64,000 nt of DNA from Trichosphaerium sp. ATCC 40318 (taxonomy: Eukaryota; Protista; Tubulinea), in contig JALMLS010000186.1 in NCBI GenBank assembly GCA_038496445.1, forward strand, positions 62,001-126,000. The letters are read 5' to 3'. Positions within the stretch are counted from its first letter, which is position 1; each line of letters begins with the position of its first letter. The notes below the pieces were generated by a model. It was not told the DNA's origin. It made no database searches and was given only the letters and a program-made list of their open reading frames with translations. Made by a program: the position numbers and the translations under genes. Shown in pieces: positions 2,961 to 10,117 of the stretch.

Positions 2961-3608
2961 CATCTATTAAACCTCCCGTTTGAGATTCAACTGGATATTA
3001 TCGATTTAGACTTGTTTGTGTATTTAACTTGGCCACTTATTTCAAAACACACAGCAATGACCACAAGGTTCGATACTGATATGAACAAGCATGGAAAATG
3101 GCGCCAAAGATTTGATAACAAGCTTGTACAGCAACAATACTGGAAACATGGTGTACAAGATGGAGAATGCCAGACATGGCATGAAAATGGAGAATTGGAG
3201 AGGCATTGTACTTACGACAATGGCCAATTGGAAGGAGAATCCAAGCGATGGTTTCACACTGGCAAATTGATGGAGCATTGTACTTACATCAACGGTAAAC
3301 TAGATGGAGAATACAAGACATGGCATCACGATGGCAAATTAATGGAACACTTTAATTACAGCAATGGCCAATTGGAAGGAGAATACAAGCAATGGTTTTA
3401 CAACGGCAACTTGATGGAGCAATGTAATTACATTGATGGTAAACTAGATGGAGAACACAAGACATGGCATCACAATGGCCAATTAGAGAGCTACAGCATT
3501 AACATTAAAGGAGAACAAGAAGGAGAATGCAAGGAATGGGATTTCGATGGGGAATTGAAGAACTACCAAACACAAGACAACCGAGGATTTATTAAATTTA
3601 ATTTATAA
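2961..3608 (+). CDS. F-box + MORN-variant repeat protein; the F-box has no in-frame ATG (possible pseudogene)
   Basis: Frame reads HLLNLPFEIQLDIIDLDLFVYLTWPLISK, then (GQLEGExKxWxxNGxL) repeats; paralog of 40801-41598. Confidence 0.8.
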   Translation, partial: HLLNLPFEIQLDIIDLDLFVYLTWPLISKHTAMTTRFDTDMNKHGKWRQRFDNKLVQQQYWKHGVQDGECQTWHENGELERHCTYDNGQLEGESKRWFHTGKLMEHCTYINGKLDGEYKTWHHDGKLMEHFNYSNGQLEGEYKQWFYNGNLMEQCNYIDGKLDGEHKTWHHNGQLESYSINIKGEQEGECKEWDFDGELKNYQTQDNRGFIKFNL

Positions 3609-4147
3609 GATTGTACGCAAAAAACATTTTTTTGTGAAAATAAACGAGAACGCACCAAATTAATCTATGACGACAATACTCAGCCTCAATGTATTATAAA
3701 TAGAGACTACCATCTCTTGGTTGTACTCCAACCAACGCATTTATGATAGTCCATAATGTGAGGTAAATGGTGAACAAGTTAACACTTTAATGCCTTATGT
3801 ACTATACTTATAGCCAATGCTGGTGCCAGCTGCATAATTTCTTAACAGGTTCTAGAGCAGCAAATGGTGCCGTGTGGCTATTATAACATCAATACTAGAA
3901 ACAGTGATATTAAGTATCTTCAAGCCAACCTGTTGACGACGTCTTGTGTGGATATTTAAGAAACAGACTGCGAAAGAAACCTTATTTTATAGTTCTCTTT
4001 CTTTTGACATTTTTGTACTTGTAGCTAATTGAACATTCGCTTGCATTAAACGACGGTCTACATTTGCTTCTGCTAAACACAAATTTAGGGATGTGTTGGT
4101 GGCATGTTTTGGTTTTCAAAGAAAATAATAAGAATTTAAATAGAGTA

Positions 4148-7100
4148 CTAAGTTTTGCGGGCTTTTAAGGCCACCACAGATGGTACTATACCTGCTTCAG
4201 TTTCAATGTTATCATCAATCAATGGTTCAGTACCTTTTCCTTGAGGTAGTTTAATATCTTGCCTACATAAAACATTAACACTATTCTGCCAAGCGAGTAT
4301 CTTTTGGTAATGGTTGGGCTTTTTCTAGAAATGTTGTAACATTTTGCTTGCCTGTAGTGCATGATTGTAGCAGCAATAGCTGATTTATCGCCAGGAACCC
4401 ACCAATATGGTATAGGAATAATAGTTATACCTGTACAAAAAGAAGAATCAGAACACGGTCAAGCTGACAAAGAAAGCAAAACACAAGAGAAGCGCTTTAA
4501 GAATCAAACGAGAACATCAAAAAAAAGTCAGTGCTGCCATACCACACTCATCACAAAGTCTAAACTTCTCACCATCACGGCTCTGTTGAAGTGATGTCGG
4601 ACCAAATTGTGCCTGTACTTTATCGGTGTAATGATGTTGCCCTTGGTATTCCAATGCAAAGTTTAAATTGGCAACAAAAATATCAAGAACAACTTGAATG
4701 CCAGTATCATGAATGACACCTATTTTATACTCTTCTTTTATATCAGCTGCTGGAAACAATTCTATTGTACAATTTAAGAGGTATCTAAATAATGTTAATA
4801 CTTTAGACGAAAAGTTCTAGTGACACGACGGTGGACACCAAATAAAGCAAAGTGACGGCAAGTTTGTTATTACCTTTGTATTGCTTTTCGAGCCTTAAAA
4901 CTAAACTGTTCAAGTTTCCACTTGTATGTTGGATATACTGGTATCAATACATGTGGCCAATACTGAAGTATTCCTCCACCTGCAACAACAATAAACATAA
5001 AAAGCATAACATAAGTACGTGCCACCACAGTCACGAATCTGAGTTGCAGAAACTCGATACCAATCTTCAGGATGTTTGACGTTTATTCTATCCGCAAGTT
5101 GAAGTACATACTCCCTTGTTGTATCTGTGTTTTGCCAATAACCAGCAGGTGCTTTAGCTAGGGAAACTCGTAAGAAGACGAAAGGCGTTCAAAAAACACA
5201 AAGTTGTTTGAAAAAAAGTTGACTTTACAAAGATGAGGTAACTCCAAACTTGTTTTTTGTCTACGTACAGAATTTATAAGACTTCCAGGTATGATCAGGG
5301 TAGATAAATTTTAAAAAAGTCATTAACGAATGACCAAACATGCTGCACAAAAAAAAATTAGCAATCAAGTTTAAAAGGAATAAAGAGTTGAAAGGTATCA
5401 TTACCCAATGACTGTCGCTCCACCCAATTTTCGTATATCAACTACATTAACACCATACCAATCTTCTATACGGTCGATTGCCTTTTGGTACTCAACCTTG
5501 CACAACACGATTAGTAAAGAGAAAAAATATAATAAAAAAAAAACAATAAATGGTATCATTGTTTTCCTCTTGTTCATACCTCCCTAGCAAACTCATATAA
5601 ATGCTCCTTATCCTTCCAAAAGTGATGTTTTACTCTATCCCCTAGAATAAATACCTTTAGTAAAAGACAAAGAGGCATTCAAAGGAATAGTTTCGTACAA
5701 AACAGCCAAGGAAGCCATTTACTTTTTGGATACATAGCCTTTGCTAGCATCTCAAGTGTGCCAAAATTCCTTTAACAAATCAGGTAAGACATTAAATCGA
5801 CAAGTTTAGGGGCTAATGCAAAGCATGTGTTTGACAACGTACTGAAGAAATCCTCGGCCACCTATTTTATATACAGTTTCATAATTTACATTGTACCACT
5901 TTTTCAAATCTGAAAACTTCAACTTCTCCTCAGCCTAGGCAAACAAAAACCCGTATTAGTACTAGACCTGATATACTCGTACCACGTACAATAATTCTAA
6001 ACTTTTCCAAGTTCTCAGAACAGCCATAAAAAGAAGGAGAGGCTTCACCTACGAGAAGTTAAATGGTCCACAACAATACACAAAAAGACAGATTATTCTT
6101 CGCAGATAGATGTCTGTACCAAATTTCCAAGGTATCCAATCGTGGTCAGGATATACGTGTTTTAAAAAATGACACATTGAATAACCGTAAGTAGCTCTGG
6201 TGAGTGATATAAGAATAAAAACCAGAAAATTACGAGAAAATCAGATAACAGAAAACTCTTACGCTAGAAGTTCTTTACCACCATGCTCAGATACTTCTGC
6301 ATGGCTTATGCCATACCAATCATCTTTGTCATTGAATCCAAAAATATCTGATATCTACAAACCCGTCAGTATAGCACTTGAGAAACTTCAAAGAAAGCAA
6401 AATACGAACATGATCAGCAAACTCTTTCTGCATCTCAGTTGTCCAGAAATTATCAGATGATGCTGAATCTGCCAGGTAATCAATACTTATACATTCACGA
6501 CTTGAAATCGTGTATACATGGACGTACTAAACTTCCATGGCAACCACTTTCGCTCAGGATATACTTGCTTTAAAAAGTTGCATACGTTTCCAAACAAACT
6601 TAACAAGTGTTAACGTTGCCCTTTTTTAATTCGATATTTTATTTATGTTAACGTACTCTAGCATACCAATACCACCTTGTGATCTGATATCGGTATCATT
6701 AATAGTATACCAACCGTCAAAATCAGATATGTTTAAATTTTTTTCAATCTAAATAAACAAAAATCAATTGTTGATCCTGTTTTTTACTATCTCACCTCAC
6801 GTGCAAAAAACTGTTGTGACCAAGTTTCTCTCCACATATCATATTGAGGTGCCCCTAATGATAATGTCAGGATTACAAGTATGTGTAAGATGAACACATA
6901 CGAACAAACTGCCATGGATGCCAATCGTACTCTTTGAACATTGCAATAAGCATCTTAGGCACTGAGCTTTCAAATTGTCTACAACAAAAGATAGTAATTA
7001 AAAATCAAACATCAACATGAACAAAAAACTGAAAAATACAACGGTCATTTCAAAGCACGCGACAAAGACCGGAAAAAACAAAAATCGAAATTAAAGAAAT

Positions 7101-9287
7101 TTGTTCAATGAATGCCACACTTAAACTGAGCGACTTTATGCACATACCCTATAAAACCACCTCCGCCATAACTACATAGTTGTTCAAGTCTGACTGATAG
7201 CCACCCTTCTTGATCTGTTATACCATATTCTGAAGCGAACTAATTCACCATTGTCAAAAAAAAAAAATGATTCAAAGCCAAACAGATAAACAACAAATTT
7301 GTTATGCACGTACTGATTTCAAGAACTCCTCCCTGTTTTCATTTTTACACCAGTAATTATTAGATACTTTAGCTAATAGGATTTTTAACTAACTAGTTAA
7401 TTTCAAAACAACAGGACGAAAAAAATAAGAAAGGTAGTGGAGAGAAGAACTGAGAAACGGATTGTGTGGAGTTTGTAGAAATTGTACTTTGACTGACAAT
7501 AACGTACCAAATCGCCACGGAACCCATTCATATTCTGGATAAATGTAGTTTAATAACCCATGCATGGTATTCCCATGCAACCTTTAAATTTTCAAAAAAA
7601 AAGAACACAAAATCATCTTCCGTACTGTGCGAGTTGTGCTGCGTTTGCTGTTCCTAGCATTCTTCTACCTACTTTAAACCATCTATCAAGTGTAGTGACG
7701 GAATGTTCATATTCAAACTATACACAGTAAGGCAAACATAAGCAGACTAAAAACGCACGTGACGAATAAAAGATTCAGCTTTGTCTCTATCCCAAATAGT
7801 TCTTTCAGCATCTTCAATTTACTTAAAACTCATTTCAGCTTTTTGAAACCTTACCGAACTTCCAAACAAGCCATGTCCTTTCTGGATATAGCCACTCGAC
7901 AAAAGCTGATACAGATTCGTGAGCGCTATAATATTTTTAGATTGCCTGGGACAACAAGAAGTACAGTACTAACCCAATAAGATAACCTCCACCAATATTA
8001 CTCAGATGTTTTTCTGAACATCGATACCAATCCTCTATCCTACTGAAGCCAAGTGACTGCTCGGCCTTTCAAAAAACATAAATTCAGTAATAACATGCAC
8101 GTATTAACATCACAACGTACATGTCTTACGAAAGGTACAACGTTTTCGTACTCTTTCCAGAAACTAATCTTATTTTCCCCTAAATTGTAGTAAGAAATTT
8201 CTTCTTGCTAACTAGTATAGTCCACGTACTAAACCTCCATCGCTCCCATTTATGATCAGGATAAACATAAAGCATAAGCTCATAAACAGTAGATCGTATG
8301 TTACTAAATCAAAAGTAATGAATGGCAAACAAAGAAACTAAACGAAATTCTCCTTTCTAAGTAGAAGAAAAAAAAAGACTCACTGCAATACATCCATACG
8401 TCTTATTTTAATAAAGTTATATTTATCGACTGAATACCATGAATCAAACTCCGTTATATTTAACTTCTCTTCAACCTGTAAAATAGAACAGAATGTCAAT
8501 AACAAACCAAAAAGCACACGTGTTTTTCATTCATGGTTATATTTTCAATGAATTTGTTCTGAGATGTCACCATTCGCACAACTATCATTACGTACATGGC
8601 GTATCATAGTTAAGACATTTTTTGGATCATCCCAAAATTGTTTCGAAAGTTTAGCTTAAATTCTAAGTGAGTATCACAGACAACAAGTCAACTTTAAAAA
8701 CCTGAAAAAAAAAAAAAGAAAAAGTCTTGTCGTACCGTTAAAAAACTCCCAAGGCACCCAAAGGTACGAGGGAAACGTTTTCCTTAAAAGAGAGTACAAT
8801 GACTGCTGGTTTAGACTAAAAAAAAACATAACAGAGTAAGTACAAACAAATAACGAACTGTTGCTCCTAAACAGTACCTCAATATCGTTCTGCCGTTTGA
8901 AATCTCCTTTAGTTTGGTCCTTGACACGCTGTACCACTCATCTAAAGTTCTCAATCGAAGTTTCTCGGCTGCCTACCGTGGTGCATAAGCAATACCAATG
9001 CGTAAAACCGCCCTCAGCATAATATCTGCAGTGTTTATTGTGAAAACACTGCAAAACATTCTACGGGTAACACAACGGTGTTTCAATGCGTGAAGTAGTA
9101 GTTTTACCTTATTACAAAATTGCAGTTCAACAGCACAATTATTGTCACTGATTTGATCTTGTGTATACGTTTTACTGCTCCATGTACGAAATTTAACTTC
9201 ACTGCCATCAATACGGCGTTTTCTTGAGGAAAGAGCACGAACAGATGCGAATAGCTGATGGCTAGCTAACCCACGCGCTCCTAACAT
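4148..9287 (-). CDS. Multi-exon tandem-repeat protein (W-x-P-W-x-F / D-W-Y repeats) with C-terminal RAP/PD-(D/E)XK-like domain and predicted mitochondrial presequence
   Basis: Start MLGARGLASHQLFASVRALSSRKRR; about 9 repeats (e.g. YLWVPWEF, YEWVPWRF, YDWHPWQF, RKWLPWKF, HDWIPWKF); LDIFVANLNFALEYQGQHHY...DGEKFRLCDECGITIIPIPYWW; many GT-AG introns; stop at 4148. Confidence 0.75.
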
Positions 9288-9484
9288 GCATTGGGGCTAT
9301 CTAGGGCGTTTTGTGAATAAAGTGTCAATGCTTTTCTTTCAAAGCTTTGGCAATACAACTCGTTCAGGTTTGACGCCACTCATAGGTTGTAAATGCTCAT
9401 AGCGCACAAAATGATAACGTTTGACTCACGTGCGGTTGTACTTACTCTTAAAACTCGCAAAGACTCCCAACAAAGTGTGTGGCA

Positions 9485-10117
9485 ATGGCAGACTCATGGG
9501 AGGATCTCACAGACGATGATTTAAAGCTTGATATTGTAGAAGAAGAACCTACAGCTTCTACGAGCGAATCAAAACCTTATACGTTGCCTACTGGTAGTGA
9601 CCACAACCTCGCTAAGCACCACCCTTATTATGCGGCTCAACCAAAATTTAAAGTATTACAACGCACTGCGCAGGCACCTGTGGTACAACAGGTAACCATA
9701 ACTGACGAAAAACGGTAACTCTTCTAAACAAACTGATAGAAACCAACCCAAACAGCTCAAACAGGCGAACCAACTCTAGAAGAGCGCGAACGTACGTTAA
9801 ACACTAATTTTGATTTTTTGAATCTTGAAATGTCGTAAAGCGTTCATTTGTTAGCGCTGATACACAAGCGTAACGAGCCGAAGAAAAACCAGTATCTCAA
9901 TGTTTACGGTTTCATAGCAACGAAAGAAATTTTCGTAGGGATACAAAAGCGCTCAAAACACAAACCAGTTGGTCTTTTCTTCTTTTTCATTCGTTTTTCA
10001 GTACAGTTATCGGTTTTTTCGTGCTTTACGTTTATTTTCGTAAATAAGTCGCCGTATCGCTAATACGAGCATAGGGCAATATGCTATAGCAAGAGCGAAA
10101 ATAATGGAAGGGAAATA
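9485..10117 (+). CDS. SUZ-domain (SZRD1-like) small RNA-binding protein
   Basis: MADSWED..., PKFKVLQR, spliced RPTLEERERQYAIARAKIM; 3 exons. Confidence 0.7.

Follow-up and report, generated by a model that had tools for sequence, protein, structure and literature searches.

The protein encoded by a nuclear, intron-rich and expressed gene of Trichosphaerium sp. ATCC 40318 combines a presequence-like N-terminal extension, ten tryptophan-rich modules predicted to be helical and a C-terminal domain of the PD-(D/E)XK nuclease type, and the explanation favoured here, held at about even confidence, is that it is a nuclease targeted to the mitochondrion and guided by its repeats. The gene lies in a window of 64,000 nucleotides (the whole stretch of contig JALMLS010000186.1 that was analysed). 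A first-pass annotation of this DNA had proposed the succession of N-terminal extension, repeat array and nuclease-like domain, and this layout is borne out, the last part having a restriction-endonuclease fold. No published study of a family with this repeat-plus-nuclease layout was found, and the names given to its relatives in databases go no further than 'hypothetical protein' or transcript identifiers.

The gene model was derived from reading frames and splice sites on the minus strand (Table 1). The start codon is the ATG at 9287, the first in-frame ATG after a stop. Nine of the 32 junctions are confirmed by spliced contigs from two public RNA runs (X1 and X2), which align to the gene without mismatches; junctions 8384/8303 and 8230/8179 in module 2 and 5269/5157 in module 9 are confirmed by RNA, and 8121/8065 in module 3 is present in RNA with one letter differing. 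The span of 4148-9287 first assigned to the gene has the correct start, but its end misses the last intron. The stop codon at 4148-4150 is in use only when the intron at 4191-4073 is retained, and an RNA contig removes that intron, so that the reading frame ends at the TAA at 3989-3987. The exons keep pace with the repeats: in nine consecutive exon triplets the phases are always 0, 2 and 1, three exons make up one repeat period, and the third exon of the ninth triplet (exon 28, 135 nt) is fused with the start of module 10. Within the window, no further copies of the gene and no transposon ends or mobile-element features were found, an Rfam search gave no match, and neither did a Pfam search with single exons of the gene.

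Table 1. Positions of the gene, its exons and introns, and the parts of the encoded protein (numbered from the first letter of the window).
Feature	Position	Strand	Basis and remarks
Whole coding region	3987..9287	-	33 exons, 953 aa, 32 introns of 41-169 nt; 3' end revised
N-terminal extension, presequence-like, aa 1-35	9183..9287	-	Composition; pI 12
Module 1, aa 56-117	8740..9122	-	A2 E 1.2e-16, profile positions 18-78; without the Trp of the first helix
Module 2, aa 119-196	8172..8736	-	A2 E 2.1e-18
Module 3, aa 193-269	7807..8233	-	A2 E 9.7e-20
Module 4, aa 271-343	7365..7803	-	A2 E 2.8e-14
Module 5, aa 340-418	6850..7511	-	A2 E 2.1e-23
Module 6, aa 423-493	6455..6837	-	A2 E 5.8e-20
Module 7, aa 493-565	6047..6457	-	A2 E 4.3e-23
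Module 8, aa 571-640	5637..6031	-	A2 E 3.1e-15
Module 9, aa 641-718	5147..5636	-	A2 E 2e-23
Module 10, aa 713-787	4897..5275	-	A2 E 4.4e-25; alignment A1 consensus
PD-(D/E)XK domain, Vsr/DUF559/RAP/homing-endonuclease type, aa 793-905	4253..4881	-	Profile A3, 113.7 bits, E 2e-37
Motif LDIF, aa 828-831, family-invariant Asp829	4676..4687	-	Family alignments
Motif EYQGQHH, aa 840-846	4631..4651	-	Glu840, Gln842, Gly843 and His846 invariant or nearly so across the family
Motif RDGEK, aa 864-868	4565..4579	-	Asp865 and Lys868 invariant
Motif IPYWW, aa 882-886, last core strand	4399..4413	-	Pro883, Trp886
Exon triplets	5269..8972	-	First eight: 92 (first 95) / 71-80 / 53-62 nt; ninth: 92 / 74 / 135
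GC-AG intron, 43 nt	4980..5022	-	43-nt RNA joint, which within the stated ambiguity can be placed only as GC..AG
GC-AG intron, 89 nt	4263..4351	-	RNA contig and splice-site model
Last intron, GT..AG, 119 nt	4073..4191	-	Loose end of X1 contig at 4192 matches 4043-4072 exactly
Last exon	3987..4072	-	Stop TAA 3989-3987, AATAAG immediately after

The repeat array is counted as ten modules of about 75 residues (period 72-80) because profile A2, built solely from proteins of other organisms, detects ten in the spliced model, each at an E-value of 1e-14 to 4e-25. The repeats reported earlier are thus real, but they had been put at about nine units of roughly 70 residues, and neither figure holds. 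The ten aligned units give the consensus DWY..GG..L..YP..W.PW.F..FW, and each is predicted to fold into five to six short helices. Module 10 is an adapter module that adjoins the nuclease and is conserved across the family (alignment A1). The repeat region as a whole is charge-neutral (pI 7.4). Column entropy over 569 repeats marks a hypervariable, acid-poor stretch at module positions 38-44 and 47-52, around an invariant Gly-Gly, and on sequence grounds this stretch is a candidate contact surface if the modules bind nucleic acid.

Both structure models used here show P0002, the closest relative, rather than the window protein itself. No solved structure matched the module (best Z 4.3, Foldseek E above 2) and no Pfam repeat family matched any of 118 modules, which upholds the view that this is a non-PPR repeat: it is neither PPR, OPR nor HPR and matches no characterised family. 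Calponin-homology matches on the repeats stayed below threshold (24.9 against 26 bits) and were judged to be mimicry of the pattern GG..LL..YP, and HTH and SAM rows were set aside as too weak. The repeat of PPR, OPR, HPR and FASTK proteins is a helical hairpin of about 35-40 residues with two antiparallel helices, whereas the module described here spans 72-80 residues and five to six short helices. PPR, PUF and TALE arrays resemble it in their way of working, as tandem helical modules that combine a conserved scaffold with a few hypervariable surface positions, although there is no homology and the present module is twice the size. In predicted shape the module is close to DUF4046 (PF13255) as represented by two ESM Atlas clusters of that name, one of Bacillota (TM 0.74, 2.3 Å over 76 residues) and one of Discosea (TM 0.71, 1.8 Å over 65 residues). 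PF13255 appears in the precomputed annotation of 12 relatives and is absent from the Pfam scans run on those proteins. A literature search for DUF4046 found no paper mentioning the family, and it is therefore a name without a function.

The C-terminal motifs singled out in the first-pass annotation (LDIF, EYQGQHH, RDGEK and IPYWW) are located as quoted. The PD-(D/E)XK signature consists of Asp829, then Glu840-Tyr-Gln842, with Lys868 coming from the following helix, and is invariant in A1 and A3. The putative catalytic set as a whole (Asp829, Glu840, Gln842, His846, Asp865 and Lys868) is intact and invariant across 31-109 relatives. In the model of P0002 (pLDDT 86.9), the C-domain has the order alpha-beta-beta-beta-alpha-beta-alpha, with a helix at 159-175, strands at 182-187, 196-202 and 207-212, a helix at 226-242 and a strand at 246-251. 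It matches 56 solved chains at a Z of at least 5, and among the 50 listed nearly all are nucleases of the same fold. Its closest structural neighbours are Vsr-type proteins (Vsr 1cw0, Z 9.2; DUF559 3hrl, Z 8.9; I-Bth0305I 3r3p, Z 8.9) tied with RAP domains (FASTKD4 9gek, Z 8.7; T. gondii mitoribosomal 9g6k_Li, Z 9.5; Tetrahymena mitoribosomal 6z1p_AS, Z 8.5). Vsr, DUF559 and I-Bth0305I share the core fold and the type of signature, Glu-x-(Asp/Gln)-Gly-x-x-His followed by Asp-x-x-(Arg/Lys); they differ in that Gln here takes the place of Asp at the second position, the Lys lies later on the helix, and a long repeat array is fused to the domain.

The earlier assignment to a RAP/PD-(D/E)XK domain is correct as to the nuclease fold, which is RAP-like by structure in the P0002 model, but the Pfam RAP model (PF08373) matches none of 109 relatives and none of the window exons. 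Pfam Vsr (PF03852) and DUF559 (PF04480) likewise gave no match in the 109 relatives (E<=0.1) or the window exons. By sequence, the closest family in Pfam is DUF2726 (PF10881), whose PD-(D/E)XK proteins come from bacteria and phages. Of the 109 relatives, 34 match it at E<=0.1 (lowest E 2e-6), and these matches cover the C-terminal half of its model; the individual scores seen are 13-22 bits, the best being 22.3 against a Pfam gathering cut-off of 24.7, and the window exons have no match. Phage proteins named DUF2726 share the fold with the nuclease. When the nuclease exon and profiles A1 and A2 were searched against the sequences of solved structures, the rows were at chance level only, such as aIF2-alpha at E 0.19, and the exon and profile searches linked no solved RAP chain to the protein by sequence.

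Judged by sequence comparison, the window protein belongs to a large family that keeps the repeat-plus-nuclease layout. A repeat profile from the window gene recovers 553 repeats in 138 of 172 proteins, all of which had been fetched through the nuclease exon alone. Relatives occur in protists, in giant-virus contigs and in bacteria. The narrow profile A3 finds 263 viral loci with the nuclease domain, and the sampled viral ORFs fuse it to NUMOD1, I-HmuI-like, treble-clef zinc-finger, DUF723 and HNH modules; the Trp-rich module is absent from 78 of 79 viral ORFs. These viral modular endonucleases of homing type have the same nuclease (EYQG(E/Q)(H/Q)H and PYWW, 30-48% identity) and, as here, carry it C-terminal to an array of small binding modules, but the kinds of module differ. 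The BFVD viral library adds 61 matches at E<=1e-3, including phage proteins that bear the names homing endonuclease or group I intron protein. Proteins that combine repeats and nuclease but have no presequence also occur in a bacterial assembly and, next to a DnaB-type helicase, in a compact contig of virus-like character. Repeat-only relatives exist as well, one of them amid bacterial mobile-element genes (IS91 transposase, integrase, TraG). A four-module array searched by tblastn against 50,697 phage records gave no match, and against IMG/VR it found itself only.

The acid-free, Arg-rich N-terminus described in the first reading is present, with no acidic residue in the first 26 and six basic residues among the first 25 (five Arg and one Lys). 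Among the 61 family proteins whose N-terminal extension is at least 20 residues long, 42 have no more than one acidic residue within the first 25 positions, against a background of 2.9 per 25. In a second set of relatives, for which the repeat array of virus-like ORF L009 served as query and which takes in bacterial and virus-like proteins, the figure is just 17 of 56. By these counts, an N-terminus poor in acidic residues is characteristic only of those family members in which it is extended. As judged by N-terminal composition, the window protein most likely enters the mitochondrion through this extension. Some relatives have Lys/Arg-rich N-termini of a more nuclear-looking, NLS-like kind.

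In a repeat-guided mitochondrial nuclease, the N-terminal extension would direct import into the mitochondrion, the ten helical modules would align along a stretch of nucleic acid and select a site, and the C-terminal Vsr/homing-type PD-(D/E)XK domain would cleave beside it. We infer that the protein is imported into mitochondria and that its modules bind nucleic acid and select a site, and likewise which class of substrate it acts on. On this last point there is a slight lean towards DNA, that is mitochondrial DNA, over RNA, because viral copies of the nuclease are fused to NUMOD/zinc-finger-type modules and because the presequence-free layout occurs beside the helicase in the virus-like contig and in the bacterial assembly. 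On the side of RNA, all large organellar helical-repeat families known to us (PPR, OPR, HPR and FASTK) act on RNA, and PD-(D/E)XK domains are capable of cutting it. Three observations sit less easily with a repeat-guided mitochondrial nuclease, namely the nuclear-looking N-termini of some relatives, the neutral charge of the repeat region and a module with no solved match showing nucleic-acid binding.

A mitochondrial RNA-processing or RNA-stabilising factor is a possible alternative, to be held tentatively. The protein would then be an amoebozoan counterpart of FASTK, OPR-RAP and HPR-RAP, whose array binds a specific transcript and whose RAP-like domain cuts RNA or merely holds it. Those proteins (human FASTKD4 9gek; T. 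gondii 9g6k and 9i05) have in common with it a targeting extension, a helical array and a C-terminal Vsr-like domain, and their C-domains superpose with that of P0002 at Z 8.7-9.5, a similarity to RAP that equals the similarity to Vsr. The acid-poor N-termini are consistent with such a factor, and the best Foldseek rows for the whole P0002 model are T. gondii mitoribosomal proteins, although these matches are weak (E 4e-3 or worse). An ESM Atlas cluster of 441 look-alikes, mostly from Tubulinea, bears the automatic name 'RAP domain-containing protein', and the niche is left open in that canonical RAP proteins were undetectable in Amoebozoa in a survey of RAP proteins (PMC8190603). However, Pfam prefers DUF2726 over RAP among the 109 relatives (34 against none), in sequence the nuclease is closest to viral proteins of homing-endonuclease build, and the bacterial and viral members have no organelle RNA to process. 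The analogy with FASTK/OPR proteins is one of two comparably likely readings, since the nearest relatives of the nuclease are viral and homing-endonuclease-like and the layout also occurs free of a presequence in bacterial and virus-like contigs.

It is unlikely that the protein is instead a homing- or defence-type DNA nuclease of the nucleus or cytoplasm, which would have come from giant viruses or bacteria, then expanded, and be selfish or directed against invading DNA. Members in giant-virus-like contigs, the repeat-only member among bacterial mobile-element genes, the homing-type viral relatives of the nuclease and the NLS-like basic N-termini of some relatives point that way. However, the setting of a homing endonuclease gene, within an intron or intein or at a free-standing mobile site, is not what the locus offers: a host gene of 33 exons, with 32 host-type introns, strict exon periodicity and a presequence-typical N-terminus, lies in a window with no transposon ends, mobile-element features or second copy, and acid-poor extensions are specific to the extension-bearing members. 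A non-catalytic structural or adaptor protein, such as a component of the mitoribosome or nucleoid in which the nuclease-like domain serves for binding only, is very improbable, since the retention of all invariant catalytic-type residues here and family-wide is hard to explain without catalysis, even though the same-fold domain occurs in chains of the solved Toxoplasma and Tetrahymena mitoribosomes, as ribosome components, and repeat-only relatives exist.

A bolder form of the repeat-guided mitochondrial nuclease, improbable as it stands, would make the modules a new natural recognition array, in which a few hypervariable residues beside the Gly-Gly let each module read a few bases and paralogs serve as differently addressed nucleases for the mitochondrial genome or its transcripts. 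If true, this would be a natural TALEN-like or PPR-like system on a fold without a solved relative.

Arrays of modules joined to a nuclease are the basis of organellar gene control (PPR, OPR and FASTK) and of genome-editing tools (zinc-finger nucleases and TALENs). The protein described here represents a third, unstudied type of module, joined to an intact nuclease of Vsr/homing type and common to an amoeba, giant viruses and bacteria. Should its substrate be mitochondrial DNA, the nuclear genes of the family would encode a large group of DNA nucleases directed to an organelle, for which we know of no precedent. If the modules read sequence, they would provide a new addressable nuclease scaffold, and the family would also fill the apparent gap in RAP proteins in Amoebozoa.

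The gene model was built from 32 anchored peptide blocks, with all frame-keeping GT/GC..AG pairs between blocks scored, in a window of about 36% G+C and short introns where successive short minus-strand open frames share a recurring Trp-rich motif. A first model had 32 exons, and the final one has 33 exons and encodes 953 amino acids. Nine of its 32 junctions are confirmed by spliced RNA contigs from two public runs, X1 and X2, the kind of cDNA evidence called for by the first-pass annotation. The 787-nt X1 contig aligns to the final six exons of the 32-exon model, with five introns out and zero mismatches, and all junctions in the contigs of both runs are the top-scoring choice among candidate splice pairs. 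At 4192 the X1 contig has a loose end of 80 nt with an exact match to 4043-4072, which reveals one further intron. The reading frame then closes at TAA 3989-3987, immediately followed by AATAAG, and the gene end at 4148 put forward earlier has to be given up, since that stop belongs to an intron-retaining reading. GC-AG introns make up two of the 32 (donor contexts GTG/GCACGT and CAG/GCAAGC). At one X2 junction (8121/8065; contig depth 2.3) a canonical GT-AG intron needs one differing letter, an Ala codon GCC read GTC, which could reflect strain variation or an error at low depth. The start ATG is the first after an in-frame stop. A divergent frame with an acidic N-terminus begins about 190 nt upstream of this ATG, and this frame and the gene may share a bidirectional promoter. 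A MORN-repeat frame, convergent to the gene and about 380 nt past its stop, has no evident link to it.

Coordinates of the repeat-nuclease gene, its supporting features and its neighbours in the window
Feature	Position	Strand	Observation
Repeat-nuclease gene	9287-3987	-	ATG at 9287
Two 151-nt X2 contigs	7997-8473		spliced
Intron at X2 junction	8063-8121	-	one differing letter
GC-AG intron	5022-4980	-	removed in RNA contig
GC-AG intron	4351-4263	-	removed in RNA contig
Further intron	4191-4073	-	GT..AG
Divergent open frame	from 9479 (within 9288-9718)	+	
MORN-repeat frame	3012-3608	+	198 aa; Pfam MORN_2, E 1.7e-25

The array holds ten units (pairwise identity 15-39%) with the consensus ..E..L.....DWY.V........GG..L....G.S....L...YP...W.PW.F.......FW...E....F.RH. 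Nine of them are encoded by three exons each, always in phases 0, 2, 1; the exons of triplets 1-8 measure 92 (first 95), 71-80 and 53-62 nt, and the 135-nt third exon of triplet 9 also takes in the beginning of the tenth unit. It follows from this strict periodicity that the array grew by duplication of a three-exon block already holding its introns. The repeat can be captured by profiles: one made from other organisms' repeats only finds all ten modules in the spliced model (E 1e-14 to 4e-25), and one based on the units of this gene detects 553 repeats, spread over 138 of the 172 proteins retrieved via the nuclease exon alone. Conservation over 569 repeats falls on Trp8, Asn13, Asp32, Trp33, Gly45-Gly46, Leu49-50, Tyr65-Pro66 and Trp70, and the most variable positions, 38-44 and 47-52, flank the Gly-Gly pair and mostly carry few acidic residues.

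A single module of P0002, the closest relative, has a confidently predicted fold of six short helices (pLDDT 85.5). The earlier view of the repeat as distinct fits the comparison of this model with solved structures, where there was no convincing match (Foldseek E >2; best VIA Z 4.3), and Pfam, with zero matches to 118 modules. ESM Atlas clusters that match it in shape are unnamed ones from Tubulinea and Nucleocytoviricota (TM 0.76-0.79), a Bacillota cluster carrying DUF4046 (TM 0.74, 2.3 A over 76 residues) and a Discosea cluster named DUF4046 (TM 0.71). DUF4046 (PF13255) also stands in the precomputed annotation of 12 relatives (P0161, P0166, P0183, P0190, P0195, P0202 and P0222; P0179, P0188, P0201, P0212 and P0213), but hmmscan against Pfam did not return it for the first seven, even with E allowed to reach 1. 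Either the Pfam copy used may lack this model, or the matches may be very weak. A literature search found DUF4046 mentioned in no paper.

A phmmer search with the 80 amino acids of exon 30 against 1.84 billion representatives gave 221 matches at E<=1e-3 (best match at 52% identity), none labelled beyond 'hypothetical protein' or transcript. Two alignments, one with 109 relatives and one with 31, show one Asp, Glu-Tyr-Gln-Gly-x-x-His, Asp-x-x-Lys and Pro-Tyr-Trp-Trp to be invariant or nearly so, and all are kept here (Asp829, Glu840, Gln842, Gly843, His846, Asp865, Lys868, Pro883, Trp886); with the family profile, the protein of this gene reaches 113.7 bits. The predicted P0002 model (pLDDT 86.9, pTM 0.70) has an alpha-beta-beta-beta-alpha-beta core, for which Vsr/DUF559/homing-type and RAP neighbours tie: a Toxoplasma gondii mitoribosomal protein (9g6k_Li, Z 9.5), Vsr (1cw0, 9.2), the I-Bth0305I homing endonuclease (3r3p, 8.9), DUF559 (3hrl, 8.9), the FASTKD4 RAP domain (9gek, 8.7) and a Tetrahymena mitoribosomal protein (6z1p_AS, 8.5). 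The proposed RAP/nuclease-like C-terminus stands as a predicted fold resembling both Vsr and FASTKD4 RAP. By sequence, Pfam RAP, like Vsr and DUF559, matches none of the 109 relatives. DUF2726 is the sole recurring Pfam family (34 of 109; best E 2e-6).

The N-terminal composition supports mitochondrial import, as judged from sequence. Residues 1-26 hold zero acidic residues, five Arg fall within positions 1-25, and there is an Arg-Ala-Leu/Ser-Ser site similar to the R-3 cleavage motif. At most one acidic residue occurs in the first 25 positions of 42 of the 61 family proteins with an extension of at least 20 amino acids (background 2.9), and of 17 of 56 (median 3) in a second set fetched via the repeat array of L009, a compact virus-like contig, which takes in bacterial and virus-like members. 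A few relatives have N-termini of more nuclear appearance. We consider it an even call that the gene product is a mitochondrion-targeted, array-guided endonuclease, which would enter the mitochondrion and whose repeat array would guide the endonuclease domain. The array's neutral charge is a real weakness of this reading, as is the lack of a match between the predicted module and any known nucleic-acid-binding fold.

As substrate, DNA is slightly favoured over RNA. To our knowledge, all organellar repeat families are a precedent for RNA. Canonical RAP proteins are reported absent from Amoebozoa (PMC8190603), which also speaks for RNA. The closest kin of the nuclease domain, and family members from prokaryotes and viruses, speak for DNA. 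IMG/VR holds 263 loci with the nuclease domain, and the Trp module is absent from 78 of 79 nuclease ORFs examined there. Ten long viral ORFs were sampled. Four of them have modules of the kinds with which homing endonucleases bind DNA (NUMOD1, I-HmuI-like, treble-clef zinc-finger, DUF723, CapR or HNH); Pfam gave no match for five and a weak EcsB match only for one. In one of the four (L062) the modules sit after the nuclease motif, not before. ORFs L062 4939-6825 and L067 4690-6240 join the nuclease domain to NUMOD1/I-HmuI-like modules or to HNH_5 and treble-clef zinc fingers, and in the latter a single protein would hold two nuclease domains. Of the viral structure predictions in BFVD, 61 are matches at E<=1e-3, and some of these are phage proteins annotated as homing endonuclease, group I intron protein, DUF559 or DUF2726.

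The Trp module itself also occurs in such settings. P0185 (L085 2468-3886, on an NCBI assembly contig), a relative of the L009 array, has six modules without the nuclease and lies in a bacterial mobile-element setting, with an IS91-type transposase, a phage integrase, an HTH gene and a TraG/VirD4 coupling protein as neighbours. P0199 (L088 8001-10013), likewise a relative of that array, has six modules on a compact giant-virus-like contig with RING-finger and kinase genes, and its 126-aa C-terminal tail, with no match to the nuclease profile, may hold a different effector domain. L009 itself encodes four modules and the nuclease, with neither introns nor a presequence, and a DnaB-type helicase gene follows 7 nt downstream; a relative of its array has seven modules and the nuclease on a bacterial-looking contig. 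On this occurrence in virus-like and bacterial-looking contigs, the module-nuclease layout predates its use in amoebae.
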